64,000 nucleotides of DNA from Auanema rhodensis. Its lineage: Eukaryota; Animalia; Nematoda. Within the stretch, counting starts at the first letter, position 1; the number at the start of each line of letters is the position of its first letter. This document shows positions 1 to 20,200 of the stretch, in pieces. The notes under the pieces were generated by a model, which searched no databases, was not told where the DNA came from, and saw nothing but the letters and a program-made list of their open reading frames with translations. The stretch lies in contig OZ059897.1 of assembly GCA_964057225.1 (NCBI GenBank), positions 21,266,001-21,330,000 on the forward strand. The letters are read 5' to 3'. The position numbers were made by a program, and so were the translations under genes.

Positions 1-2457
1 TGAAAATCGAGGATATAAGTGTGAACTTATATCAGTTGATATCTCGGTGCATTTTTAAGCTAGCGCAAATCTGATAACACAGATCGACGCAGCTTAAAAA
101 TCCGCATCGAATGCACTATACTACATCGAGAAACGCTTAATACAAAAATTAGTTATGATCGTTTGAAAAATGATGCATTAGTGTATGTTGAAATTCCATG
201 TACACTCAACATTGCTTCCAAAAACATTTTGACAAAAATTTTTTCGAAAAATTTCAAAATAATTTAGCAAAAAGTAGATGTTTTTAGATTCCTTTTTTTA
301 AGGCAAAGACGATGGACAATGTTATTCAACGAAAAAATTATTTCTTCAGGGTGAAAATCGAGGATATAAGTGTGAACTTATATCAGTTGATATCTCGGTG
401 CATTTTTAAGCTAGCGCAAATCTGATAACACAGATCGACGCAGCTTAAAAATCCGCATCGAATGCACTATACTACATTAAGAAACGCTTAATACGAAAAT
501 TAGTTATGATCGTTTGAAAAATGATGCATTAGTGTATGTTGAGTTTCCATGTACACTCAACATTGCTTCCAAAAACATTTTGACAAAAATTTTTTCGAAA
601 AATTTCGAAATAATTTAGCAAAAAGTAGATGTTTTTAGATTCCATTTTTCAAGGCAAAGACGATAGACAATGTTATTCAACGAAAAAATTAATTCTTCAG
701 GGTGAAATTCGAGGATATAAGTGTGAACCTATATCAGTTGATATCTCGGTGCATTTTCAAGCTAGCGCAAATCTGATAACACAGATCGACACAGCTTAAA
801 AATCCGCATCGAATGCACTATACTACATTAAGAAACGCTTGATACAAAAATTAGTTATAATCGTTTGAAAAATGATGCATTAGTGTATGTTGAGTTTCCA
901 TGTACACTCAACATTGCTTCCAAAAACATTTTGACAAAAATTTTTTCGAAAAATTTCAAAATAATTTAGCAAAAAGTAGATGTTTTTAGATTTCTTTTTT
1001 CAAGGCAAAAACGATGGACAATGCTATTCAACGAAAAAATTAATTCTTCAGGGTGAAAATCGAGGATATAAGTGTGAACTTATATCAGTTGATATCTCGG
1101 TGCATTTTTAAGCTAGCGCAAATCTGATAACACAGATCGACGCAGCTTAAAAATCCGCATCGAATGCCTTATACTACATCGAGAAACGCTTGATACAAAA
1201 ATTGGTTATGATCGTTTGAAAAATGATGCATTAGTGTATGTTGAGTTTCCATGTACACTCAACATTGCTTCCAAAAACATTTTGACAAAAATTTTTTCGA
1301 AAAATTTCAAAATAATTTAGCAAAAAGTAGATGTTTTTAGATTCCATTTTTCAAGGCAAAGACGATAGACAATGTTATTCAACGAAAAAATTAATTCTTC
1401 AGGGTGAAAATCGAGGATATAAGTGTGAACTTATATCAGTTGATATCTCGGTGCATTTTTAAGCTAGCGCAAATCTGATAACACAGATCGACGCAGCTTA
1501 AAAATCCGCATCGAATGCACTATACTACATTGAGAAACGCTTGATACAAAAATTAGTTATGATTGTTTGAAAAATGATGCATTAGTGTATGTTGAGTTTC
1601 CATGTACACTCAACATTGCTTCCAAAAACATTTTGACAAAAATTTTTTCGAAAAATTTCGAAATAATTTAGCAAAAAGTAGATGTTTTTAAATTCCTTTT
1701 CTTAAGGCAAAGACGATGGACAATGTTATTCAACGAAAAAATTAATTCTTCAGGGTGAAAATCGAGGATATAAGTGTGAACTTATATCAGTTGATATCTC
1801 GGTGCATTTTTAAGCTAGCGCAAATCTGATAACACAGATCGACGCAGCTTAAAAATTCGCATCGAATGCACTATACTACATTGAGAAACGCTTAATACAC
1901 AAATTAGTTATGATCGTTTGAAAAATGATGCATTAGTGTATGTTGAGTTTCCATGTACACTCAACATTGCTTCCAAAAACATTTTGACAAAAATTTTTTC
2001 GAAAAATTTCAAAATAATTTAGCAAAAAGTAGATGTTTTTAGATTCCATTTTTCAAGGCAAAGACGATGGACAATGTTATTCAACGAAAAAATTAATTCT
2101 TCAGGGTGAAAATCGAGGATATAAGTGTGAACTTATATCAGTTGATATCTCGGTGCATTTTTAAGCTAGCGCAAATCTGATAACACAGATCGACGCAGCT
2201 TAAAAATCCGCATCGAATGCACTATACTACATTGAGAAACGCTTGATACAAAAATTAGTTATGATCGTTTGAAAAATGATGCATTAGTGTATGTTGAGTT
2301 TCCATGTACACACAACATTGCTTCCAAAAACATTTTGACAAAAACTTTTTCGAAAAATTTCAAAATAATTTAGCAAAAAGTAGATGTTTTTAGATTCCTT
2401 TTCTTAAGGCAAAGACGATGGACAATGTTATTCAACGAAAAAATTAATTCTTCAGGG

Positions 2458-5265
2458 TGAAAATCGAGGATATAAGTGTGAACTTATATCAGTTGATATC
2501 TCGGTGCATTTTTAAGCTAGCGCAAATCTGATAACACAGATCGACGCAGCTTAAAAATCCGCATCGAATGCACTATACTACATTGAGAAACGCTTAATAC
2601 ACAAATTAGTTATGATCGTTTGAAAAATGATGCATTAGTGTATGTTGAGTTTCCATGTACACTCAACATTGCTTCCAAAAACATTTTGACAAAAATTTTT
2701 TCGAAAAATTTCAAAATAATTTAGCAAAAAGTAGATGTTTTTAGATTCCATTTTTCAAGGCAAAGACGATGGACAATGTTATTCAACGAAAAAATTAATT
2801 CTTCAGGGTGAAAATCGAGGATATAAGTGTGAACTTATATCAGTTGATATCTCGGTGCATTTTTAAGCTAGCGCAAATCTGATAACACAGATCGACGCAG
2901 CTTAAAAATCCGCATCGAATGCACTATACTACATTGAGAAACGCTTGATACAAAAATTAGTTATGATCGTTTGAAAAATGATGCATTAGTGTATGTTGAG
3001 TTTCCATGTACACACAACATCGCTTCCAAAAACATTTTGACAAAAACTTTTTCGAAAAATTTCAAAATAATTTAGCAAAAAGTAGATGTTTTTAGATTCC
3101 TTTTTTTAAGGCAAAGACGATGGACAATGTTATTCAACGAAAAAATTAATTCTTCAGGGTGAAAATCGAGGATATAAGTGTGAACTTATATCAGTTGATA
3201 TCTCGGTGCACTTTTAAGCTAGCGCAAATCTGATAACACAGATCGACGCAGCTTAAAAATCCGCATCGAATGCACTATACTACATCGAGAAACGCTTGAT
3301 ACAAAAATTAGTTATGATCGTTTGAAAAATGATGCATTAGTGTATGTTGAGTTTCCATGTACACTCAACATTGCTTCCAAAAACATTTTGACAAAAATTT
3401 TTTCGAAAAATTTCAAAATAATTTAGCAAAAAGTAGATGTTTTTAGATTCCTTTTTTTAAGGCAAAGACGATGGACAATGTTATTCAACGAAAAAATTAA
3501 TTCTTCAGGGTGAAAATCGAGGATATAAGTGTGAACTTATATCAGTTGATATCTCGGTGCATTTTTAAGCTAGCGCAAATCTGATAAAACAGATCGACGC
3601 AGCTTAAAAATCCGCATCGAATGCACTATACTACATTGAGAAACGCTTGATACAAAAATTAGTTATGATTGTTTGAAAAATGATGCATTAGTGTATGTTG
3701 AGTTTCCATGTACACTCAACATTGCTTCCAAAAACATTTTGACAAAAATTTTTTCGAAAAATTTCAAAATAATTTAGCAAAAAGTAGATGTTTTTAGATT
3801 CCTTTTTTTAAGGCAAAGACGATGGACAATGTTATTCAACGAAAAAATTATTTCTTCAGGGTGAAAATCGAGGATATAAGTGTGAACTTATATCAGTTGA
3901 TATCTCGGTGCATTTTTAAGCTAGCGCAAATCTGATAACACAGATCGACGCAGCTTAAAAATCCGCATCGAATGCACTATACTACATTGAGAAACGCTTA
4001 ATACACAAATTAGTTATGATCGTTTGAAAAATGATGCATTAGTGTATGTTGAGTTTCCATGTACACTCAACATTGCTTCCAAAAACATTTTGACAAAAAT
4101 TTTTTCGAAAAATTTCAAAATAATTTAGCAAAAAGTAGATGTTTTTAGATTCCATTTTTCAAGGCAAAGACGATGGACAATGTTATTCAACGAAAAAATT
4201 AATTCTTCAGGGTGAAAATCGAGGATATAAGTGTGAACTTATATCAGTTGATATCTCGGTGCATTTTTAAGCTAGCGCAAATCTGATAACACAGATCGAC
4301 GCAGCTTAAAAATCCGCATCGAATGCACTATACTACATTGAGAAACGCTTGATACAAAAATTAGTTATGATCGTTTGAAAAATGATGCATTAGTGTATGT
4401 TGAGTTTCCATGTACACACAACATCGCTTCCAAAAACATTTTGACAAAAACTTTTTCGAAAAATTTCAAAATAATTTAGCAAAAAGTAGATGTTTTTAGA
4501 TTCCTTTTTTTAAGGCAAAGACGATGGACAATGTTATTCAACGAAAAAATTAATTCTTCAGGGTGAAAATCGAGGATATAAGTGTGAACTTATATCAGTT
4601 GATATCTCGGTGCATTTTTAAGCTAGCGCAAATCTGATAACACAGATCGACGCAGCTTAAAAATCCGCATCGAATGCACTATACTACATCGAGAAACGCT
4701 TGATACAAAAATTAGTTATGATCGTTTGAAAAATGATGCATTAGTGTATGTTGAGTTTCCATGTACACTCAACATTGCTTCCAAAAACATTTTGACAAAA
4801 ATTTTTTCGAAAAATTTCAAAATAATTTAGCAAAAAGTAGATGTTTTTAGATTCCTTTTTTTAAGGCAAAGACGATGGACAATGTTATTCAACGAAAAAA
4901 TTAATTCTTCAGGGTGAAAATCGAGGATATAAGTGTGAACTTATATCAGTTGATATCTCGGTGCATTTTTAAGCTAGCGCAAATCTGATAAAACAGATCG
5001 ACGCAGCTTAAAAATCCGCATCGAATGCACTATACTACATTGAGAAACGCTTGATACAAAAATTAGTTATGATTGTTTGAAAAATGATGCATTAGTGTAT
5101 GTTGAGTTTCCATGTACACTCAACATTGCTTCCAAAAACATTTTGACAAAAATTTTTTCGAAAAATTTCAAAATAATTTAGCAAAAAGTAGATGTTTTTA
5201 GATTCCTTTTTTTAAGGCAAAGACGATGGACAATGTTATTCAACGAAAAAATTAATTCTTCAGGG
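2458..5265. repeat. Higher-order 4-monomer (1404-bp) tandem duplication in satellite A
   Basis: The ordered variants TAATACACAAAT / CACACAACATCGC+AAAACTTTTT / CATCGAG / GATAAAACAG occur in 2458-3861 and again in 3862-5265. Confidence 0.85.
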
Positions 5266-8200
5266 TGAAAATCGAGGATATAAGTGTGAACTTATATCAG
5301 TTGATATCTCGGTGCATTTTTAAGCTAGCGCAAATCTGATAAAACAGATCGACGCAGCTTAAAAATCCGCATCGAATGCACTATACTACATTGAGAAACG
5401 CTTGATACAAAAATTAGTTATGATTGTTTGAAAAATGATGCATTAGTGTATGTTGAGTTTCCATGTACACTCAACATTGCTTCCAAAAACATTTTGACAA
5501 AAATTTTTTCGAAAAATTTCAAAATAATTTAGCAAAAAGTAGATGTTTTTAGATTCCTTTTTTTAAGGCAAAGACGATGGACAATGTTATTCAACGAAAA
5601 AATTAATTCTTCAGGGTGAAAATCGAGGATATAAGTGTGAACTTATATCAGTTGATATCTCGGTGCATTTTTAAGCTAGCGCAAATCTGATAACACAGAT
5701 CGACGCAGCTTAAAAATCCGCATCGAATGCACTATACTACATCAAGAAACGCTTGATACAAAAATTAGTTATGATCGTTTGAAAAATGATGCATTAGTGT
5801 ATGTTGAGTTTCCATGTACACTCAACATTGCTTCCAAAAACATTTTGACAAAAATGTTTTTCGAAAAATTTCAAAATAATTTAGCAGAAAGTAGATGTTT
5901 TTAGATTCCATTTTTCAAGGCAAAGACGATAGGCAATGTTATTCAACGAAAAAATTAATTCTTCAGGGTGAAAATCGAGGATATAAGTGTGAACTTATAT
6001 CAGTTGATATCTCGGTGCATTTTTAAGCTAGCGCAAATCTGATAACACAGATCGACGCAGCTTAAAAATCCGCATCGAATGCACTATACTACATTGAGAA
6101 ACGCTTGATACAAAAATTAGTTATGATTGTTTGAAAAATGATGCATTAGTGTATGTTGAGTTTCCATGTACACTCAACATTGCTTCCAAAAACATTTTGA
6201 CAAAAATTTTTTCGAAAAATTTCAAAATAATTTAGCAAAAAGTAGATGTTTTTAGATTCCTTTTTTTAAGGCAAAGACGATGGACAATGTTATTCAACGA
6301 AAAAATTAATTCTTCAGGGTGAAAATCGAGGATATAAGTGTGAACTTATATCAGTTGATATCTCGGTGCATTTTTAAGCTAGCGCAAATCTGATAACACA
6401 GATCGACGCAGCTCAAAAATCCGCATCGAATGCACTATACTACATCAAAAAACGCTTGATACAAAAATTAGTTATGATCGTTTGAAAAATGATGCATTAG
6501 TGTATGTTGAGTTTCCATGTACACTCAACATTGCTTCCAAAAACATTTTGACAAAAATTTTTTCGAAAAATTTCAAAATAATTTAGCAAAAAGTAGATGT
6601 TTTTAGATTCCTTTTTTTAAGGCAAAGACGATGGACAATGTTATTCAACGAAAAAATTAATTCTTCAGGGTGAAAATCGAGGATATAAGTGTGAACTTAT
6701 ATCAGTTGATATCTCGGTGCATTTTTAAGCTAGCGCAAATCTGATAACACAGATCGACGCAGCTTAAAAATCCGCATCGAATGCACTATACTACATCAAG
6801 AAACGCTTGATACAAAAATTAGTTATGATCGTTTGAAAAATGATGCATTAGTGTATGTTGAGTTTCCATGTACACTCAACATTGCTTCCAAAAACATTTT
6901 GACAAAAATGTTTTTCGAAAAATTTCAAAATAATTTAGCAGAAAGTAGATGTTTTTAGATTCCATTTTTCAAGGCAAAGACGATAGGCAATGTTATTCAA
7001 CGAAAAAATTAATTCTTCAGGGTGAAAATCGAGGATATAAGTGTGAACTTATATCAGTTGATATCTCGGTGCATTTTTAAGCTAGCGCAAATCTGATAAC
7101 ACAGATCGACGCAGCTTAAAAATCCGCATCGAATGCACTATACTACATTAAGAAACGCTTAATACAAAAATTAGTTATGATCGTTTGAAAAATGATGCAT
7201 TAGTGTATGTTGAGTTTCCATGTACACTCAACATTGCTTCCAAAAACATTTTGACAAAAATTTTTTCGAAAAATTTCAAAATAATTTAGCAAAAAGTAGA
7301 TGTTTTTAGATTCCATTTTTCAAGGCAAAGACGATAGGCAATGTTATTCAACGAAAAAATTAATTCTTCAGGGTGAAAATCGAGGATATAAGTGTGAACT
7401 TATATCAGTTGATATCTCGGTGCATTTTTAAGCTAGCGCAAATCTGATAACACAGATCGACGCAGCTTAAAAATCCGCATCGAATGCACTATACTACATC
7501 AAGAAACGCTTGATACAAAAATTAGTTATGATCGTTTGAAAAATGATGCATTAGTGTATGTTGAGTTTCCATGTACACTCAACATTGCTTCCAAAAACAT
7601 TTTGACAAAAATGTTTTTCGAAAAATTTCAAAATAATTTAGCAGAAAGTAGATGTTTTTAGATTCCATTTTTCAAGGCAAAGACGATAGGCAATGTTATT
7701 CAACGAAAAAATTAATTCTTCAGGGTGAAAATCGAGGATATAAGTGTGAACTTATATCAGTTGATATCTCGGTGCATTTTTAAGCTAGCGCAAATCTGAT
7801 AAAACAGATCGACGCAGCTTAAAAATCCGCATCGAATGCACTATACTACATTGAGAAACGCTTGATACAAAAATTAGTTATGATTGTTTGAAAAATGATG
7901 CATTAGTGTATGTTGAGTTTCCATGTACACTCAACATTGCTTCCAAAAACATTTTGACAAAAATTTTTTCGAAAAATTTCAAAATAATTTAGCAAAAAGT
8001 AGATGTTTTTAGATTCCTTTTTTTAAGGCAAAGACGATAGGCAATGTTATTCAACGAAAAAATTAATTCTTCAGGGTGAAAATCGAGGATATAAGTGTGA
8101 ACTTATATCAGTTGATATCTCGGTGCATTTTTAAGCTAGCGCAAATCTGATAACACAGATCGACGCAGCTTAAAAATCCGCATCGAATGCACTATACTAC

Positions 8201-9130
8201 ATCAAGAAACGCTTGATACAAAAATTAGTTATGATCGTTTGAAAAATGATGCATTAGTGTATGTTGAGTTTCCATGTACACTCAACATTGCTTCCAAAAA
8301 CATTTTGACAAAAATGTTTTTCGAAAAATTTCAAAATAATTTAGCAGAAAGTAGATGTTTTTAGATTCCATTTTTCAAGGCAAAGACGATAGGCAATGTT
8401 ATTCAACGAAAAAATTAATTCTTCAGGGTGAAAATCGAGGATATAAGTGTGAACTTATATCAGTTGATATCTCGGTGCATTTTTAAGCTAGCGCAAATCT
8501 GATAAAACAGATCGACGCAGCTTAAAAATCCGCATCGAATGCACTATACTACATTGAGAAACGCTTGATACAAAAATTAGTTATGATTGTTTGAAAAATG
8601 ATGCATTAGTGTATGTTGAGTTTCCATGTACACTCAACATTGCTTCCAAAAACATTTTGACAAAAATTTTTTCGAAAAATTTCAAAATAATTTAGCAAAA
8701 AGTAGATGTTTTTAGATTCCTTTTTTTAAGGCAAAGACGATGGACAATGTTATTCAACGAAAAAATTAATTCTTCAGGGCGAAAATCGAGGATATAAGTG
8801 TGAACTTATATCAGTTGATATCTCGGTGCATTTTTAAGCTAGCGCAAATCTGATAACACAGATCGACGCAGCTCAAAAATCCGCATCGAATGCACTATAC
8901 TACATCAAAAAACGCTTGATACAAAAATTAGTTATGATCGTTTGAAAAATGATGCATTAGTGTATGTTGAGTTTCCATGTACACTCAACATTGCTTCCAA
9001 AAACATTTTGACAAAAATTTTTTCGAAAAATTTCAAAATAATTTAGCAAAAAGTAGATGTTTTTAGATTCCATTTTTCAAGGCAAAGACGATAGGCAATG
9101 TTATTCAACGAAAAAATTAATTCTTCAGGG

Positions 9131-9454
9131 TGAAAATCGAGGATATAAGTGTGAACTTATATCAGTTGATATCTCGGTGCATTTTTAAGCTAGCGCAAAT
9201 CTGATAACACAGATCGACGCAGCTTAAAAATCCGCATCGAATGCACTATACTACATCGATAAACGCTTGATACAAAAATTAGTTATGATCGTTTGAAAAA
9301 TGATGCATTAGTGTATGTTGAGTTTCCATGTACACTCAACATTGCTTCCAAAAACATCAAAATAATTTAGCAAAAAGTAGATGTTTTTAGATTCCATTTT
9401 TCAAGGCAAAGACGATAGGCAATGTTATTCAACGAAAAAATTAATTCTTCAGGG
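9131..9454. repeat. 324-bp satellite A monomer variant (27-bp deletion), copy 1
   Basis: AAAAACAT|CAAAATAAT at 9357/9358; lacks TTTGACAAAAATTTTTTCGAAAAATTT. Confidence 0.95.
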
Positions 9455-12262
9455 TGAAAATCGAGGATATAAGTGTGAACTTATATCAGTTGATATCTCG
9501 GTGCATTTTTAAGCTAGCGCAAATCTAATAACACAGATCGACGCAGCTTAAAAATCCGCATCGAATGCACTATACTACATTGAGAAACGCTTGATACAAA
9601 AATTAGTTATGATTGTTTGAAAAATGATGCATTAGTGTATGTTGAGTTTCCATGTACACTCAACATTGCTTCCAAAAACATTTTGACAAAAATTTTTTCG
9701 AAAAATTTCAAAATAATTTAGCAAAAAGTAGATGTTTTTAGATTCCTTTTTTTAAGGCAAAGACGATGGACAATGTTATTCAACGAAAAAATTAATTCTT
9801 CAGGGTGAAAATCGAGGATATAAGTGTGAACTTATATCAGTTGATATCTCGGTGCATTTTTAAGCTAGCGCAAATCTGATAACACAGATCGACGCAGCTT
9901 AAAAATCCGCATCGAATGCACTATACTACATTGAGAAACGCTTGATACACAAATTAGTTATGATTGTTTGAAAAATGATGCATTAGTGTATGTTGAGTTT
10001 CCATGTACACTCAACATTGCTTCCAAAAACATTTTGACAAAAATTTTTTCGAAAAATTTCAAAATAATTTAGCAAAAAGTAGATGTTTTTAGATTCCTTT
10101 TTTTAAGGCAAAGACGATGGACAATGTTATTCAACGAAAAAATTAATTCTTCAGGGTGAAAATCGAGGATATAAGTGTGAACTTATATCAGTTGATATCT
10201 CGGTGCATTTTTAAGCTAGCGCAAATCTGATAATACAGATCGACGCAGCTCAAAAATCCGCATCGAATGCACTATACTACATCAAGAAACGCTTGATACA
10301 AAAATTAGTTATGATCGTTTGAAAAATGATGCATTAGTGTATGTTGAGTTTCCATGTACACTCAACATTGCTTCCAAAAACATTTTGACAAAAATTTTTT
10401 CGAAAAATTTCAAAATAATTTAGCAAAAAGTAGATGTTTTTAGATTCCATTTTTCAAGGCAAAGACGATAGGCAATGTTATTCAACGAAAAAATTAAATC
10501 TTCAGGGTGAAAATCGAGGATATAAGTGTGAACTTATATCAGTTGATATCTCGGTGCATTTTTAAGCTAGCGCAAATCTGATAACACAGATCGACGCAGC
10601 TTAAAAATCCGCATCGAATGCACTATACTACATTGAGAAACGCTTGATACAAAAATTAGTTATGATTGTTTGAAAAATGATGCATTAGTGTATGTTGAGT
10701 TTCCATGTACACTCAACATTGCTTCCAAAAACATTTTGACAAAAATTTTTTCGAAAAATTTCAAAATAATTTAGCAAAAAGTAGATGTTTTTAGATTCCT
10801 TTTTTTAAGGCAAAGACGATGGACAATGTTATTCAACGAAAAAATTAATTCTTCAGGGTGAAAATCGAGGATATAAGTGTGAACTTATATCAGTTGATAT
10901 CTCGGTGCATTTTTAAGCTAGCGCAAATCTGATAACACAGATCGACGCAGCTTAAAAATCCGCATCGAATGCACTATACTACATTGAGAAACGCTTGATA
11001 CACAAATTAGTTATGATTGTTTGAAAAATGATGCATTAGTGTATGTTGAGTTTCCATGTACACTCAACATTGCTTCCAAAAACATTTTGACAAAAATTTT
11101 TTCGAAAAATTTCAAAATAATTTAGCAAAAAGTAGATGTTTTTAGATTCCTTTTTTTAAGGCAAAGACGATGGACACTGTTATTCAACGAAAAAATTAAT
11201 TCTTCAGGGTGAAAATCGAGGATATAAGTGTGAACTTATATCAATTGATATCTCGGTGCATTTTTAAGCTAGCGCAAATCTGATAATACAGATCGACGCA
11301 GCTCAAAAATCCGCATCGAATGCACTATACTACATCAAGAAACGCTTGATACAAAAATTAGTTATGATCGTTTGAAAAATGATGCATTAGTGTATGTTGA
11401 GTTTCCATGTACACTCAACATTGCTTCCAAAAACATTTTGACAAAAATTTTTTCGAAAAATTTCAAAATAATTTAGCAAGAAGTAGATGTTTTTAGATTC
11501 CATTTTTCAAGGCAAAGACGATAGGCAATGTTATTCAACGAAAAAATTAATTCTTCAGGGTGAAAATCGAGGATATAAGTGTAAACTTATATCAGTTGAT
11601 ATCTCGGTGCATTTTTAAGCTAGCGCAAATCTGATAACACAGATCGACGCAGCTTAAAAATCCGCATCGAATGCACTATACTACATTGGGAAACGCTTAA
11701 TACAAAAATTAGTTATGATCGTTTGAAAAATGATGCATTAGTGTATGTTGAGTTTCCATGTACACTCAACATTGCTTCCAAAAACATTTTGACAAAAATT
11801 TTTTCGAAAAATTTCAAAATAATTTAGCAAAAAGTAGATGTTTCTAGATTCCTTTTTTTAAGGCAAAGACGATGGACAATGTTATTCAACGAAAAAATTA
11901 ATTCTTCAGGGTGAAAATCGAGGATATAAGTGTGAACTTATATCAGTTGATATCTCGGTGCATTTTTAAGCTAGCGCAAATCTGATAATACAGATCGACG
12001 CAGCTCAAAAATCCGCATCGAATGCACTATACTACATCAAGAAACGCTTGATACAAAAATTAGTTATGATCGTTTGAAAAATGATGCATTAGTGTATGTT
12101 GAGTTTCCATGTACACTCAACATTGCTTCCAAAAACATTTTGACAAAAATTTTTTCGAAAAATTTCAAAATAATTTAGCAAAAAGTAGATGTTTTTAGAT
12201 TCCATTTTTCAAGGCAAAGACGATAGGCAATGTTATTCAACGAAAAAATTAATTCTTCAGGG

Positions 12263-12586
12263 TGAAAATCGAGGATATAAGTGTGAACTTATATCAGTTG
12301 ATATCTCGGTGCATTTTTAAGCTAGCGCAAATCTGATAACACAGATCGACGCAGCTTAAAAATCCGCATCGAATGCACTATACTACATCGATAAACGCTT
12401 GATACAAAAATTAGTTATGATCGTTTGAAAAATGATGCATTAGTGTATGTTGAGTTTCCATGTACACTCAACATTGCTTCCAAAAACATCAAAATAATTT
12501 AGCAAAAAGTAGATGTTTTTAGATTCCATTTTTCAAGGCAAAGACGATAGGCAATGTTATTCAACGAAAAAATTAATTCTTCAGGG
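12263..12586. repeat. 324-bp satellite A monomer variant (27-bp deletion), copy 2
   Basis: Same deletion junction at 12489/12490. Confidence 0.95.
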
Positions 12587-13990
12587 TGAAAATCGAGGAT
12601 ATAAGTGTGAACTTATATCAGTTGATATCTCGGTGCATTTTTAAGCTAGCGCAAATCTAATAACACAGATCGACGCAGCTTAAAAATCCGCATCGAATGC
12701 ACTATACTACATTGAGAAACGCTTGATACAAAAATTAGTTATGATTGTTTGAAAAATGATGCATTAGTGTATGTTGAGTTTCCATGTACACTCAACATTG
12801 CTTCCAAAAACATTTTGACAAAAATTTTTTCGAAAAATTTCAAAATAATTTAGCAAAAAGTAGATGTTTTTAGATTCCATTTTTCAAGGCAAAGACGATA
12901 GGCAATGTTATTCAACGAAAAAATTAATTCTTCAGGGTGAAAATCGAGGATATAAGTGTGAACTTATATCAGTTGATATCTCGGTGCATTTTTAAGCTAG
13001 CGCAAATCTGATAACACAGATCGACGCAGCTTAAAAATCCGCATCGAATGCACTATACTACATTGAGAAACGCTTGATACAAAAATTAGTTATGATTGTT
13101 TGAAAAATGATGCATTAGTGTATGTTGAGTTTCCATGTACACTCAACATTGCTTCAAAAAACATTTTGACAAAAATTTTTTCGAAAAATTTCAAAATTAT
13201 TTAGCAAAAAGTAGATGTTTTTAGATTCCTTTTTTTAAGGCAAAGACGATGGACAATGTTATTCAACGAAAAAATTAATTCTTCAGGGTGAAAATCGAGG
13301 ATATAAGTGTGAACTTATATCAGTTGATATCTCGGTGCATTTTTAAGCTAGCGCAAATCTGATAACACAGATCGACGCAGCTTAAAAATCCGCATCGAAT
13401 GCACTATACTACATTGAGAAACGCTTGATACACAAATTAGTTATGATTGTTTGAAAAATGATGCATTAGTGTATGTTGAGTTTCCATGTACACTCAACAT
13501 TGCTTCCAAAAACATTTTGACAAAAATTTTTTCGAAAAATTTCAAAATAATTTAGCAAAAAGTAGATGTTTTTAGATTCCTTTTTTTAAGGCAAAGACGA
13601 TGGACAATGTTATTCAACGAAAAAATTAATTCTTCAGGGTGAAAATCGAGGATATAAGTGTGAACTTATATCAGTTGATATCTCGGTGCATTTTTAAGCT
13701 AGCGCAAATCTAATAACACAGATCGACGCAGCTTAAAAATCCGCATCGAATGCACTATACTACATTGAGAAACGCTTGATACAAAAATTAGTTATGATTG
13801 TTTGAAAAATGATGCATTAGTGTATGTTGAGTTTCCATGTACACTCAACATTGCTTCCAAAAACATTTTGACAAAAATTTTTTCGAAAAATTTCAAAATA
13901 ATTTAGCAAAAAGTAGATGTTTTTAGATTCCATTTTTCAAGGCAAAGACGATAGGCAATGTTATTCAACGAAAAAATTAATTCTTCAGGG

Positions 13991-14314
13991 TGAAAATCGA
14001 GGATATAAGTGTGAACTTATATCAGTTGATATCTCGGTGCATTTTTAAGCTAGCGCAAATCTGATAACACAGATCGACGCAGCTTAAAAATCCGCATCGA
14101 ATGCACTATACTACATTGAGAAACGCTTGATACAAAAATTAGTTATGATCGTTTGAAAAATGATGCATTAGTGTATGTTGAGTTTCCATGTACACTCAAC
14201 ATTGCTTCCAAAAACATCAAAATAATTTAGCAAAAAGTAGATGTTTTTAGATTCCATTTTTCAAGGCAAAGACGATAGGCAATGTTATTCAACGAAAAAA
14301 TTAATTCTTCAGGG
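13991..14314. repeat. 324-bp satellite A monomer variant (27-bp deletion), copy 3
   Basis: Same deletion junction at 14217/14218. Confidence 0.95.
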
Positions 14315-17194
14315 TGAAAATCGAGGATATAAGTGTGAACTTATATCAGTTGATATCTCGGTGCATTTTTAAGCTAGCGCAAATCTAATAACACAGATCG
14401 ACGCAGCTTAAAAATCCGCATCGAATGCACTATACTACATTGAGAAACGCTTGATACAAAAATTAGTTATGATTGTTTGAAAAATGATGCATTAGTGTAT
14501 GTTGAGTTTCCATGTACACTCAACATTGCTTCCAAAAACATTTTGACAAAAATTTTTTCGAAAAATTTCAATATAATTTAGCAAAAAGTAGATGTTTTTA
14601 GATTCCATTTTTCAAGGCAAAGACGATAGGCAATGTTATTCAACGAAAAAATTAATTCTTCAGGGTGAAAATCGAGGATATAAGTGTGAACTTATATCAG
14701 TTGATATCTCGGTGCATTTTTAAGCTAGCGCAAATCTGATAACACAGATCGACGCAGCTTAAAAATCCGCATCGAATGCACTATACTACATTGAGAAACG
14801 CTTGATACAAAAATTAGTTATGATTGTTTGAAAAATGATGCATTAGTGTATGTTGAGTTTCCATGTACACTCAACATTGCTTCAAAAAACATTTTGACAA
14901 AAATTTTTTCGAAAAATTTCAAAATTATTTAGCAAAAAGTAGATGTTTTTAGATTCCTTTTTTTAAGGCAAAGACGATGGACAATGTTATTCAACGAAAA
15001 AATTAATTCTTCAGGGTGAAAATCGAGGATATAAGTGTGAACTTATATCAGTTGATATCTCGGTGCATTTTTAAGCTAGCGCAAATCTGATAACACAGAT
15101 CGACGCAGCTTAAAAATCCGCATCGAATGCACTATACTACATTGAGAAACGCTTGATACACAAATTAGTTATGATTGTTTGAAAAATGATGCATTAGTGT
15201 ATGTTGAGTTTCCATGTACACTCAACATTGCTTCCAAAAACATTTTGACAAAAATTTTTTCGAAAAATTTCAAAATAATTTAGCAAAAAGTAGATGTTTT
15301 TAGATTCCTTTTTTTAAGGCAAAGACGATGGACAATGTTATTCAACGAAAAAATTAATTCTTCAGGGTGAAAATCGAGGATATAAGTGTGAACTTATATC
15401 AGTTGATATCTCGGTGCATTTTTAAGCTAGCGCAAATCTGATAATACAGATCGACGCAGCTCAAAAATCCGCATCGAATGCACTATACTACATCAAGAAA
15501 CGCTTGATACAAAAATTAGTTATGATCGTTTGAAAAATGATGCATTAGTGTATGTTGAGTTTCCATGTACACTCAACATTGCTTCCAAAAACATTTTGAC
15601 AAAAATTTTTTCGAAAAATTTCAAAATAATTTAGCAAGAAGTAGATGTTTTTAGATTCCATTTTTCAAGGCAAAGACGATAGGCAATGTTATTCAACGAA
15701 AAAATTAATTCTTCAGGGTGAAAATCGAGGATATAAGTGTAAACTTATATCAGTTGATATCTCGGTGCATTTTTAAGCTAGCGCAAATCTGATAACACAG
15801 ATCGACGCAGCTTAAAAATCCGCATCGAATGCACTATACTACATTGGGAAACGCTTAATACAAAAATTAGTTATGATCGTTTGAAAAATGATGCATTAGT
15901 GTATGTTGAGTTTCCATGTACACTCAACATTGCTTCCAAAAACATTTTGACAAAAATTTTTTCGAAAAATTTCAAAATAATTTAGCAAAAAGTAGATGTT
16001 TCTAGATTCCTTTTTTTAAGGCAAAGACGATGGACAATGTTATTCAACGAAAAAATTAATTCTTCAGGGTGAAAATCGAGGATATAAGTGTGAACTTATA
16101 TCAGTTGATATCTCGGTGCATTTTTAAGCTAGCGCAAATCTGATAATACAGATCGACGCAGCTCAAAAATCCGCATCGAATGCACTATACTACATCAAGA
16201 AACGCTTGATACAAAAATTAGTTATGATCGTTTGAAAAATGATGCATTAGTGTATGTTGAGTTTCCATGTACACTCAACATTGCTTCCAAAAACATTTTG
16301 ACAAAAATTTTTTCGAAAAATTTCAAAATAATTTAGCAAAAAGTAGATGTTTTTAGATTCCATTTTTCAAGGCAAAGACGATAGGCAATGTTATTCAACG
16401 AAAAAATTAATTCTTCAGGGTGAAAATCGAGGATATAAGTGTGAACTTATATCAGTTGATATCTCGGTGCATTTTTAAGCTAGCGCAAATCTGATAACAC
16501 AGATCGACGCAGCTTAAAAATCCGCATCGAATGCACTATACTACATTGAGAAACGCTTGATACAAAAATTAGTTATGATTGTTTGAAAAATGATGCATTA
16601 GTGTATGTTGAGTTTCCATGTACACTCAACATTGCTTCCAAAAACATTTTGACAAAAATTTTTTCGAAAAATTTCAAAATTATTTAGCAAAAAGTAGATG
16701 TTTTTAGATTCCTTTTTTTAAGGCAAAGACGATGGACAATGTTATTCAACGAAAAAATTAATTCTTCAGGGTGAAAATCGAGGATATAAGTGTGAACTTA
16801 TATCAGTTGATATCTCGGTGCATTTTTAAGCTAGCGCAAATCTGATAACACAGATCGACGCAGCTCAAAAATCCGCATCGAATGCACTATACTACATCAA
16901 GAAACGCTTGATACAAAAATTAGTTATGATCGTTTGAAAAATGATGCATTAGTGTATGTTGAGTTTCCATGTACACTCAACATTGCTTCCAAAAACATTT
17001 TGACAAAAATTTTTTCGAAAAATTTCAAAATAATTTAGCAAAAAGTAGATGTTTTTAGATTCCATTTTTCAAGGCAAAGACGATAGGCAATGTTATTCAA
17101 CGAAAAAATTAATTCTTCAGGGTGAAAATCGAGGATATAAGTGTGAACTTATATCAGTTGATATCTCGGTGCATTTTTAAGCTAGCGCAAATCT

Positions 17195-17215
17195 TTCTTT
17201 TTCGCAATTTCAAAG
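17195..17215. other. A/B array junction: 11-bp filler TTCTTTTTCGC (17195-17205) plus 10-bp inverted copy of satellite B sequence AATTTCAAAG (17206-17215)
   Basis: A stops at monomer position 72 (...GCGCAAATCT) and B resumes at TCATGGTAACC. 17206-17215 is the reverse complement of CTTTGAAATT at 17231-17240. Confidence 0.93.
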
Positions 17216-17240
17216 TCATGGTAACCATGACTTTGAAATT
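17206..17240. repeat. Perfect 35-bp palindrome (17-bp arms, 1-nt centre at 17223) found only at the junction
   Basis: AATTTCAAAGTCATGGT-A-ACCATGACTTTGAAATT. Internal B monomers carry only the 13-15 bp core (T)CATGGTAACCATG(A). Confidence 0.97.
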
Positions 17241-20200
17241 TACGTGAACTTTAATTTATGCTAATTAAATGTACACGTGATGTGCACTTGGTATGTAACT
17301 CGCTTCACGTGAAAGATAACGAGATGCGGTTTTCAAAATTAGATTCCCCATGTCCATATTAGTCTGAAAACAAATTTTTATTGATATTGGTGCATGGTAA
17401 CCATGACTTTGAAATTTACGTGAACTTTAATTTGTGCTAATTAAATGTACACGTGATGTGCTCTTGGTATGTAACTCGCTTCACGTGAAAGATAAAGAGA
17501 TGCGGTTTCCAAAATTAGATTCCCCATGTCCATATTAGTCTAAAAACAAATTTTTATTGATATTGGTTCATGGTAACCATGACTTTGAAATTTACGTGAA
17601 CTTTAATTTATGCTAAATAAATGTACACGTGATGTGCACTTGGTATGTAACTCGCTTCACGTGAAAGATAAAGAGATGCGGTTTTCAAAATTAGATTCCC
17701 CATGTCCATATTAGTCTGAAAACAAATTTTTATTGATATTGGTGCATGGTAACCATGACTTTGAAATTTACGTGAACTTTAATTTATGCTAATTAAATGT
17801 ACACGTGATGTGCACTTGGTATGTAACTCGCTTCACGTGAAAGATAAAGAGATGCGGTTTTCAAAATTAGATTCCCCATGTCCATATCAGTCTAAAAACA
17901 AATTTTTATTGATATTGGTGCATGGTAACCATGACTTTGAAATTTACGTGAACTTTAATTTATGCTAATTAAATGTACACGTGATGTGCACTTGGTATGT
18001 AACTCGCTTCACGTGAAAGATAAAGAGATGCCGTTTTCAAAATTAGATTCCCCATGTCCATATTAGTCTAAAAACAAATTTTTATTGATATTGGTTCATG
18101 GTAACCATGACTTTGAAATTTACGTGAACTTTAATTTATGCTAATTAAATGTACACGTGATGTGCACTTGGTATGTAACTCGCTTCACGTGAAAGATAAA
18201 GAGATGCGGTTTTCAAAATTAGATTCCCCATGTCCATATCAGTCTAAAAACAAATTTTTATTGATATTGGTGCATGGTAACCATGACTTTGAAATTTACG
18301 TGAACTTTAATTTGTGCTAATTAAATGTACACGTGATGTGCTCTTGGTATGTAACTCGCTTCACGTGAAAGATAAAGAGATGCGGTTTTCAAAATTAGAT
18401 TCCCCATGTCCATATTAGTCTAAAAACAAATTTTTATTGATATTGGTTCATGGTAACCATGACTTTGAAATTTACGTGAACTTTAATTTATGCTAATTAA
18501 ATGTACACGTGATGTGCACTTGGTATGTAACTCGCTTCACGTGAAAGATAACGAGATGCGGTTTTCAAAATTAGATTCCCCATGTCCATATTAGTCTGTA
18601 AACAAATTTTTATTGATATTGGTGCATGGTAACCATGACTTTGAAATTTACGTGAACTTTAATTTATGCTAATTAAATGTACACGTGATGTGCACTTGGT
18701 ATGTAACTCGCTTCACGTGAAAGATAAAGAGATGCGGTTTTCAAAATTAGATTCCCCATGTCCATATCAGTCTAAAAACAAATTTTTATTGATATTGGTG
18801 CATGGTAACCATGACTTTGAAATTTACGTGAACTTTAATTTATGCTAATTAAATGTACACGTGATGTGCACTTGGTATGTAACTCGCTTCACGTGAAAGA
18901 TAAAGAGATGCCGTTTTCAAAATTAGATTCCCCATGTCCATATTAGTCTAAAAACAAATTTTTTTGATATTGGTTCATGGTAACCATGACTTTGAAATTT
19001 ACGTGAACTTTAATTTATGCTAATTAAATGTACATGTGATGTGCACTTGGTATGTAACTCGCTTCACGTGAAAGATAAAGAGATGCGGTTTTCAAAATTA
19101 GATTCCCCATGTCCATATTAGTCTAAAAACAAATTTTTATTGATATTGGTTCATGGTAACCATGACTTTGAAATTTACGTGAACTTTAATTTATGCTAAT
19201 TAAATGTACACGTGATGTGCACTTGGTATGTAACTCGTTTCACGTGAAAGATAACGAGATGCGGTTTTTAAAATTAGATTCCCCATGTCCATATTAGTCT
19301 GAAAACAAATTTTTATTGATATTGGTGCATGGTAACCATGACTTTGAAATTTACGTGAACTTTAATTTGTGCTAATTAAATGTACACGTGATGTGCTCTT
19401 GGTATGTAACTCGCTTCACGTGAAAGATAAAGAGATGCGGTTTTCAAAATTAGATTCCCCATGTCCATATTAGTCTAAAAACAAATTTTTATTGATATTG
19501 GTTCATGGTAACCATGACTTTGAAATTTACGTGAACTTTAATTTATGCTAATTAAATGTACACGTGATGTGCACTTGGTATGTAACTCGCTTCACGTGAA
19601 AGATAAAGAGATGCGGTTTTCAAAATTAGATTCCCCATGTCCATATTAGTCTAAAAACAAATTTTTATTGATATTGGTGCATGGTAACCATGACTTTGAA
19701 ATTTACGTGAACTTTAATTTATGCTAATTAAATGTACACGTGATGTGCACTTGGTATGTAACTCGCTTCACGTGAAAGATAAAGAGATGCGGTTTTCAAA
19801 ATTAGATTCCCCATGTCCATATTAGTCTAAAAACAAATTTTTATTGATATTGGTTCATGGTAACCATGACTTTGAAATTTACGTGAACTTTAATTTATGC
19901 TAATTAAATGTACACGTGATGTGCACTTGGTATGTAACTCGCTTCACGTGAAAGATAACGAGATGCGGTTTTCAAAATTAGATTCCCCATGTCCATATTA
20001 GTCTGAAAACAAATTTTTATTGATATTGGTGCATGGTAACCATGACTTTGAAATTTACGTGAACTTTAATTTGTGCTAATTAAATGTACACGTGATGTGC
20101 TCTTGGTATGTAACTCGCTTCACGTGAAAGATAAAGAGATGCGGTTTTCAAAATTAGATTCCCCATGTCCATATTAGTCTAAAAACAAATTTTTATTGAT

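Follow-up and report, generated by a model that had tools for sequence, protein, structure and literature searches.

A candidate snap-back templated-insertion scar at the border between two satellite blocks in germline-restricted DNA of Auanema rhodense

In this study, we found that the join between two satellites, A and B, is a block boundary in the germline-restricted terminal repeat region of an autosome scaffold of Auanema rhodense, and that a short dyad native to B is lengthened there into a much longer palindrome. Our preferred reading, to which we give a probability of about one half, is that the extended palindrome is a snap-back (fold-back) templated-insertion scar. A bottom-strand 3' end at the left edge of the 15-bp dyad of B would have paired with the other dyad half on the same strand and been extended by about 10 nt with B's own sequence as template, and the extended end would then have unfolded and been joined, by way of an 11-nt filler, to an end in satellite A left by a break or a switch. 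The route may have been synthesis-dependent microhomology-mediated (polymerase-theta-type) end joining or a replicative template switch. We infer the order of the steps, the enzyme and the copying during A-B joining, and polymerase theta is a candidate only. The anatomy of the palindrome, its recurrence in the genome and the layout of the blocks were observed directly.

There are few base-level accounts of how megabase satellite blocks abut, and at this junction a signature of repair or copying can be read in germline-only DNA. Array boundaries are seemingly untreated in the genome preprint, because the word "junction" is absent from its text. If the left edge of the dyad is a recurrent break point, a small feature of the monomer would be linked to the large-scale layout of eliminated chromatin, and a testable snap-back end-joining substrate would be available in a relative of C. 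elegans; if it is not recurrent, the junction carries a neat but ordinary scar.

The A-B junction and its palindrome

The window, a stretch of 64,000 nucleotides, lies on a scaffold called C5 here; C4, C6, C8, C82 and C103 are other contigs of the same assembly. It consists of A and B arrays throughout, except for positions 17195-17215. Satellite A (forward strand, 1-17194) has a 351-bp unit with 49 copies in the window and is probably the published AT-2. Its final copy is truncated after position 72 of the TRF-phase monomer, and the last A monomers are no more divergent than the array mean. Satellite B (forward strand, 17216-64000) has a 176-bp unit and is AT-1, a published A. rhodense repeat located in DNA discarded from body cells (genome preprint); the published AT-1 FISH probe has 227 exact reverse-strand matches in the window. 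The species discards about 61% of its genome. Across the genome, B amounts to about 154,000 monomers, or 27 Mb of satellite, and its monomers are about 98-99% uniform. Kinship of A and B, considered since 351 is about 2 x 176, was rejected, with the best local alignments not above shuffles.

The A block adjoining the junction measures about 3.5 Mb. The B block beginning at 17216 covers about 1.83 Mb and reaches the end of the scaffold; according to sampled points, it is forward over roughly its first 1.08 Mb (up to 22.365 Mb at least) and then inverted as far as the scaffold end at 23.111 Mb. The preliminary description had considered B as an array inserted into A, and this was contradicted by the presence of B at every sampled point up to the scaffold end. 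A resumption of A at about monomer position 73, which such an insertion would predict, was not found either: genome-wide, no junction of non-A sequence with A position 73 was detected, at a sensitivity of about 24%.

The same description had placed the start of the B array at its own dyad beside A and had taken the sequence to its left as the exact reverse complement of downstream B, and both statements were confirmed. The last A base is 17194, and the retained B end begins exactly at the native 15-bp dyad (17216-17230; 7+1+7 with centre A at 17223), the proposed primer site for snap-back. Between them lie an 11-nt filler, TTCTTTTTCGC (17195-17205), which separates the left arm from A, and a 10-nt segment, AATTTCAAAG (forward strand, 17206-17215), the putative inverted templated extension. 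This segment stands in place of the normal upstream B bases and is the exact reverse complement of sequence 15 nt away, namely the native B bases at 17231-17240 on the forward strand, which are the proposed template; a 10-nt match has a chance of about 1e-6. Together they form an inverted repeat at 17206-17240 with 100% complementary arms (17206-17222 and 17224-17240) around the central A, which in its strict form is 17+1+17 and not a self-complementary 35-mer. When folded as a DNA hairpin, the 35-mer reached -15 kcal/mol (z = -8.3), compared with -3.1 to -3.9 kcal/mol in native monomers.

Within the window, 244 of the roughly 266 monomers have the 13-nt core of the dyad in exact form, and the arms of these 244 dyads are 7 nt long in 146, 6 nt in 97 and 17 nt only at this junction. 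The claim that the long palindrome is unique therefore held for the exact-core dyads of the window and failed for the genome, where four more sites carry it. The flanks of the native dyad are not quasi-palindromic (2 of 12 matches).

The filler alone matched neither A nor B significantly on either strand (P 0.27-0.78). It is not a decayed B tail, an origin that we rejected because the adjacent B monomers are at consensus level (173-175 of 176 positions) with no edge decay. At C5, the filler conceals any microhomology of the final join. When the next 10 nt were included, the sequence aligned to A positions 181-200 (P ~0.005), a better fit than to inverted B (P ~0.04), and A contains a near-identical 9-10-mer, AAATTTCAAA; nowhere else in the two monomers do A and inverted B match as well as over this 10-mer. 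The left arm might accordingly be derived from A, with the palindrome a by-product of a rearrangement inside A and its homology to B due to chance. We consider this origin extremely unlikely, as the alignment requires a 2-nt gap and one mismatch, the G at 17215 fits inverted B only, the upstream sequence is not contiguous A, and C8, C82 and C103 have this arm too, without A nearby.

An artefact of assembly or library was also weighed, in which a chimeric or fold-back HiFi read would have bridged an A contig and a B contig. The junction links two megabase repeat blocks, the weakest ground of assemblers, and its sequence occurs once in the assembly. However, known fold-back read artefacts are inverted copies of kilobase length and not of 10 nt, as seen here. 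The extension is also found at four further sites, among them a duplicated one whose copies differ at a single base, and the HiFi reads over the eliminated regions, at about 29x coverage, were reported to be uniquely mappable for the most part (genome preprint). Such an artefact is thus very unlikely.

The same extension at other genomic sites

Extension of the dyad was found at five sites among the roughly 154,000 B monomers of the genome. Besides C5, there are four sites in three contexts (one on C8, two on C82 and one on C103), of which one is at another B-array start and three are inside B arrays. At C8:26739199, a B array starts against a 167-bp satellite, with 3 nt of microhomology (TAA) to that satellite and an extension of 9-12 nt; a relationship of this satellite to A was rejected. 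On C82, an extension of 6-10 nt is combined with a further 12-nt templated insert, this one direct and taken from B positions 36-47, which is joined via AATT; the net gain is 9 nt, and the site is present twice with a single-base difference. The C103 site has a 7-nt deletion and a 9-nt insert with 1 nt of homology (A), and its base at -2 is the native T, which would follow if the priming 3' end had been one base longer and had carried a terminal mismatch. At C8, C82 and C103 too, the retained B end lies at the dyad, within one base, and the C82 and C103 contexts look like small deletion-plus-templated-insertion scars. Exact 24-mer matches numbered 38 genome-wide, and 33 of these were rejected as fold-backs, being ordinary monomers with an A-to-T change at the centre read on the other strand.

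Every context has its own left side with features of end joining. The extension lengths are tightly clustered (6-12 nt) and, because of ambiguities at the joins, may differ from one another, in keeping with separate events. All five sites lengthen one palindrome in one direction: the search yielded no dyad extended to the right, nor any extension of the second palindrome of B (10 bp) in either direction. With four equally likely classes and independent events, an outcome of one class only has P ~0.016. This one-sidedness, the tight clustering of the lengths, the lack of a clear template for the C5 filler and the upstream likeness of C5 and C82 described below count against our preferred reading. 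The recurrence of the same scar at four other sites suggests that the left edge of the dyad is a recurrent break or priming point. Snap-back priming at the dyad, as proposed earlier, fits a left arm that reads as an inverted copy of B primed there; the further proposal that it is a one-off record of this junction does not stand, given the copies on C8, C82 (two) and C103. The scar either recurs at the dyad or predates the A-B join.

The second of these possibilities would mean that the palindrome came first. One fold-back or template switch would have made a rare 35-bp variant, which was spread between arrays by the exchange that homogenises B, and its hairpin would then have provoked breaks at the left base that were rejoined to A (C5), to the 167-bp satellite (C8) and to B with small inserts (C82, C103), so that the palindrome would be the cause of the A-B junction and not its record. 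This sequence of events is a possible but more doubtful account. The same palindrome, direction and approximate left limit are seen in all four contexts, the other three palindrome/direction classes are empty, and the hairpin is far more stable than the native one (-15 against about -3.5 kcal/mol). Two of the five copies of this variant, present in about 1 in 30,000 monomers, are at array starts. The centre base is flipped in one of the five sites compared with 33 in about 154,000 ordinary monomers (P ~0.001), which suggests an active hairpin. The 20 nt upstream at C5 and C82 are also more alike than shuffles (P ~0.0007), with 7 of the 13 matching bases being A's own sequence. On the other hand, no unrearranged copy of the 35-mer variant was found genome-wide, and the monomers bearing the palindrome have no private SNPs in common. 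The number of events equals that of the recurrent model, with spread to four contigs in addition. Known hairpin nucleases cut at the loop, which would destroy palindromes and not spare them. The native T at -2 in C103 would need an extra mutation or gene conversion, and the B start on C6 sits at a plain dyad.

Starts of B arrays and orientation switches

The B start at C6:20669609 coincides exactly with the left dyad edge and lacks an extension. A site-specific retrotransposon nuclease cutting the dyad was rejected; the C6 flank has no Pfam-recognisable ORF. In total, three foreign-looking B starts were located at the dyad edge, compared with about 0.45 per control phase over nine phases, from a counting method that catches about one quarter of true ends and with three events only. 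The Poisson probability is about 0.01, or about 0.075 if C5 and C8 share an origin, and the excess at the left edge is accordingly modest (P ~0.01-0.08). It is confined to foreign-looking junctions: raw discontinuity counts at the dyad are not above those of several control phases, where homopolymer slips dominate. B arrays begin at the dyad in these three cases, and other foreign-looking starts lie at other monomer phases. As a general array end the dyad is not upheld, since orientation switches do not use it either; it was likewise rejected as a general inversion point, and no convergent dyad palindrome was present anywhere in the genome.

These switches bear on a further explanation, namely that the palindrome is the remnant of a large fold-back inversion, in which a junction of inverted B with forward B at the dyad had its unstable long palindrome trimmed by a deletion to an inverted arm of about 10 nt and was fused to A. 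At C4:5954412 there are signs of one junction of inverted with forward B across a short spacer, and inverted B flanks both sides on C5 (at 17.3 Mb and from 22.37 Mb). Nevertheless, no intact inverted-to-forward switch at the dyad was found anywhere in the genome, two events would be needed, the deletions in all four contexts having to stop at the same point to within a few nt, and the cases inside the C82 and C103 arrays require loss of the entire inverted arm. We therefore regard a trimmed inversion as quite improbable.

A stronger form of the recurrent reading would make the dyad a sequence- or structure-specific germline hotspot for breaks and priming, with its left edge cut by a dedicated activity and snap-back repair setting the borders of the megabase-sized, germline-restricted AT-1 blocks, so that a cis element of a satellite would shape the architecture of eliminated DNA. 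We think this unlikely.

Comparison with known systems

P-nucleotide additions in V(D)J joints and hAT excision are usually 1-4 nt long. They resemble the extension described here in being palindromic and contiguous with the retained end. In contrast, the flanks of the present junction are plain satellite monomers with no transposon end or recombination signal, its addition is 10 nt long, and the hairpin nick would have been 10 nt from the tip; opening of a hairpin-sealed end, one of the origins first entertained, is not supported. In quasi-palindrome template-switch mutation (the Ripley model, and short template switches in genomes), the growing strand folds back at a hairpin and serves as its own template, and the flanks become a longer perfect palindrome. 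This fits the variants inside the C103 and C82 arrays without any double-strand break. The classical cases correct an imperfect palindrome, whereas the B flanks match at only 2 of 12 positions and two of our cases end in a different satellite.

In A. rhodense itself, the break site of programmed DNA elimination (SFE) is a 29-nt palindromic motif with telomere repeats at its centre, at the border of retained and eliminated DNA (genome preprint). The present junction is not a break site of this type, because A and B fill the window except for 17195-17215 and no telomere array is present in it. A search of the paper texts for the dyad sequence gave no match.

Fold-back inverted duplications in human (PMC3907307), end-capping in breakage-fusion-bridge cycles (PMC3834830) and small palindromes formed de novo at amplicon junctions (PMC3734650) are reported to share annealing within one strand, at a short inverted repeat close to a DNA end, and self-templated synthesis. 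The reported events duplicate kilobases to megabases, with a spacer left behind, whereas only about 10 nt were copied here and no inverted array follows: beside the C5 junction there is no long inverted array copy, and the left flank is forward A. Other parallels are the palindrome-associated satellite junctions of the Nasonia PSR chromosome (Reed et al. 1994, cited in PMC5139131) and of phBglII400 in bivalves (PMC5139131), where abrupt transitions map non-randomly to a short palindrome of the monomer and terminal monomers are without decay. In both, the breaks are reported to fall inside 10-12-bp palindromes, and no extension seems to be described, whereas at the present junction the break is at the dyad edge, inverted copying lengthened the palindrome from 15 bp to 35 bp, and the clustering is weak, with three events.

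A further known system is synthesis-dependent or theta-mediated end joining (SD-MMEJ/TMEJ). In Drosophila, inverted repeats close to a break have been shown to support snap-back priming (PMC5728401), snap-back or Pol-theta end joining with templated insertions has been described for Pol theta in vitro (PMC4912351) and in C. elegans (PMC4032859, PMC5068794), and the Pol-theta signature in C. elegans consists of templated inserts from nearby flanks with at least 1 nt of homology (PMC4032859). Microhomology of at least 1 nt is present in the joins at C8 (TAA), C82 (AATT) and C103 (A), and at C5 the filler conceals the join. In this pathway, a 3' end primes on an inverted repeat near the break, a short, non-processive copy of the flank is made, and the product unfolds and joins via 1-4 nt of homology, with iterative rounds producing compound inserts such as that at C82; it is also one of the main sources of structural change in the germline of a related rhabditid nematode. 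The present case differs in that the primer is a 6-7-bp stem built into each monomer of a 27-Mb satellite, that two different megabase arrays are joined and not the ends of a 50-200-bp deletion, and that the C5 filler is without a clear template. The junction is a clean new example both of snap-back templated insertion and of palindrome-associated satellite junctions, which are known already.

Palindrome at the border of two satellite arrays

Satellite A occupied positions 1-17194 of the window (351-bp unit, 49 copies, 96% internal match) and satellite B positions 17216-64000 (176-bp unit, ~266 copies, 98% match), with no relatedness between the two in either orientation compared. The last A base, 17194, was position 72 of the TRF-phase A monomer. 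An 11-nt filler (17195-17205) separated it from an inverted repeat at 17206-17240 (17 + 1 + 17, centre A at 17223), the inner 15 bp of which (17216-17230) were the native B dyad. In the left arm, the outermost 10 nt (17206-17215) displaced the usual upstream bases and were the exact reverse complement of 17231-17240. The palindrome that the preliminary description placed at the start of the B array was borne out, its arms being exact, with the small correction that its central base remains unpaired. Folded as a single DNA strand, the 35-mer gave a hairpin of -15 kcal/mol (z = -8.3), compared with -3.1 to -3.9 kcal/mol for native monomers. The dyad core occurred 244 times in exact form in the window; 146 of these had 7-nt arms and 97 had 6-nt arms, and 17-nt arms occurred only at the junction.

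Of their 176 positions, the first B monomers had 173-175 in agreement with the consensus, and the final A monomers were typical as well. Neither array thus decays towards the border, and the filler is not the remains of a degenerated monomer. No significant template for the filler alone was found in A or B. Filler plus the next 10 nt could be aligned to A positions 181-200 (P ~0.005), as if the left arm had been derived from satellite A, but this alignment requires one gap and one mismatch and leaves unaccounted for both the G at 17215 and three contexts in which A is absent, making an A-derived arm unlikely. Elsewhere in the window, 3 of the 49 A monomers had lost 27 bp and measured 324 bp (e.g., 14049-14372). 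Sixteen B monomers were shortened to 175 bp by loss of 1 nt from a run and lay mostly at roughly regular spacing at ~26.0-35.9 kb, and a dyad-disrupting B variant likewise recurred at near-regular spacing at ~26-36 kb, which suggests a local higher-order repeat.

The genome searches were made in an assembly of 180,911,798 bases; a 180.9-Mb germline assembly of Auanema rhodense, with "two autosome-specific" terminal repeats, has been described (preprint 10.64898/2026.08.27.747507). The AT-1 FISH probe of that preprint had 227 exact matches to the reverse strand of B in the window, identifying satellite B, on sequence identity, as the published AT-1 repeat, and satellite A is probably AT-2, the second of these repeats. 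Matching B monomers numbered ~154,000 genome-wide (roughly 27 Mb), and nematode telomere repeats were present in the genome.

Short stretches sampled along the C5 scaffold (23,111,030 bases), of which the window covers 21,266,001-21,330,000, gave inverted B at 17.3 Mb, forward A at 17.8-20.8 Mb and in the window as far as the 21.283-Mb junction, forward B at 21.34-22.365 Mb (a block of ~1.08 Mb) and inverted B from 22.370 Mb to the scaffold end (~0.74 Mb). From this layout, the junction is the border of a ~3.5-Mb A block and a ~1.83-Mb B block. The possibility, raised earlier, that a B array was inserted into A, which would resume at about position 73, was not upheld: at the sampled points the scaffold was B onward to its end, and a search of the whole genome for places where non-A bases give way to A at position 73, sensitive to about one quarter of such junctions, found none. 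An assembly artefact at the C5 junction is argued against by the extension's reappearance at four further sites, including one present in two copies that differ at a single base, by the 29x coverage reported for such regions (preprint 10.64898/2026.08.27.747507) and by the shortness of the inverted copy.

Recurrence of the extended palindrome

A whole-genome search with the 35-mer (centre base free, up to three mismatches) located the extended palindrome at five sites in four contexts; the claim that it occurs nowhere else held within the window and failed for the genome, where four further sites exist. On C5 the B array starts against A with the 11-nt filler and an extension of 10 nt. At C8:26739199 the B array begins beside a short 167-bp satellite with no relation to A, three ambiguous bases (TAA) lying at the join, with arms reading 19 nt and an extension of 9-12 nt. 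Two copies lie 361 bp apart inside a forward B array (C82:562720 and C82:563081; extension 6-10 nt, net +9 nt), one with T and the other with A at the centre, and on their left side the normal 10 bases have given way to 12 nt copied in direct orientation from B positions 36-47, with AATT shared at the join. At C103:100953, again within a B array in forward orientation, 9 inverted bases stand in place of 7 native ones with 1-nt homology (extension 8-9 nt); position -2 keeps its native T, as would be expected if a one-base-longer 3' end had primed with a terminal mismatch. The left 24-mer had 33 other matches, all of them opposite-strand readings of ordinary monomers whose centre A had become T; these monomers were frequently clustered at multiples of 176 bp. 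At C80:1,109,052-1,137,303, seven B monomers with a 9-nt slippage duplication in the dyad, the core being partly repeated, are a local higher-order variant.

We put the probability that the fold-back arose when A and B were joined, as one of several separate events, at about one half. A fold-back copy at the dyad would be the first step both in this model and in one in which the palindrome came first, and the two differ in whether it happened during the A-B joining. Separate events are favored by a junction anatomy particular to each context, by ambiguity ranges that permit differing extension lengths, by their accounting for the native T in C103, and by a break at the same point on C6 that carries no extension. 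A single origin of the palindrome, followed by rearrangements that it provoked, seems to us a less likely alternative. It would explain the same palindrome in the same direction at all five sites, the clustering of extension lengths, and a dyad never extended rightwards together with a 10-bp palindrome of B never extended either way (P ~0.016 under equal rates). The flipped centre in one of five copies, compared with 33 in ~154,000 ordinary monomers (P ~0.001), points the same way, as does the likeness of the 20 nt upstream of C5 and C82 (P ~0.0007), though seven of the 13 shared bases belong to A itself. Against a single origin, no unrearranged copy of the variant was found genome-wide, and the palindrome-bearing monomers had no private SNPs in common.

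Position of B-array ends relative to the dyad

To find array ends, ten monomer phases were queried for B sequence whose five preceding bases departed from the native ones. Six matches fell at the left edge of the dyad: four palindromic sites, one internal deletion and one plain start (C6:20669609), where B begins exactly at this edge against non-satellite DNA with no extension. The flank of the latter (C6:20668109-20671137, junction at ~1505) has its own ~120-bp inverted repeat (roughly 181-300 and 640-780), and its ORFs had no Pfam match. The nine control phases gave 0, 0, 0, 1, 2, 5, 8, 10 and 254 matches, mostly homopolymer slips and small indels; those that looked foreign and independent numbered ~3-5 (roughly 0.45 per phase), with foreign-looking matches at phases 25, 66 and 106. 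Against this rate, three foreign junctions at the dyad edge give a Poisson P of ~0.01, or ~0.075 if C5 and C8 are not independent, and the excess of B ends at one dyad edge is at most modest.

A general dyad-based mechanism, as first proposed, does not stand, since B also ends at other phases and no convergent dyad palindrome was found genome-wide. For example, a repeated unit at C8 26.80-26.84 Mb contains an inverted B array that breaks off at monomer position 19, where a TIR-like element adjoins it. This element, present at least five times, has terminal-inverted-repeat-like ends around a GGCGCC-centred palindrome; the B end lies ~200 bp past position 1500 of the extracted loci, and interstitial telomere-repeat arrays occur in the same 0.6-Mb region. 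The lack of a convergent palindrome also means that the orientation switch of B on C5 does not use the dyad. That switch, between 22,365,300 and 22,370,001, had no dyad-centred palindrome and may reflect either a true inversion or the joining of sequences during scaffolding. The 29-mer matched at C4:5954412 resembled a switch from inverted to forward B at monomer position ~31, its visible arms and its spacer each measuring 7 nt; this would place a fold-back junction outside the dyad.

Comparison with known repair systems

In Caenorhabditis elegans, polymerase-theta-mediated end joining produces inserts copied from nearby flanks, with at least 1 nt of homology and iterative priming (PMC4032859). 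The two in-array contexts (C82 and C103) look like scars of a small deletion plus templated insertion, resembling those that define theta-mediated joining in C. elegans (PMC4032859), and are consistent as well with snap-back SD-MMEJ as described in Drosophila (PMC5728401). The putative mechanism of the extension corresponds to snap-back templated insertion (SD-MMEJ/TMEJ) and to template switching during replication at hairpins. Satellite junctions with palindromes have already been reported for the Nasonia PSR chromosome, as cited in PMC5139131, and for a bivalve satellite (PMC5139131). To these cases the present analysis adds a dyad that goes from 15 to 35 bp through a repair copy, the location of such a scar where megabase blocks meet in germline-restricted DNA, and its presence again at four other sites of the assembly.
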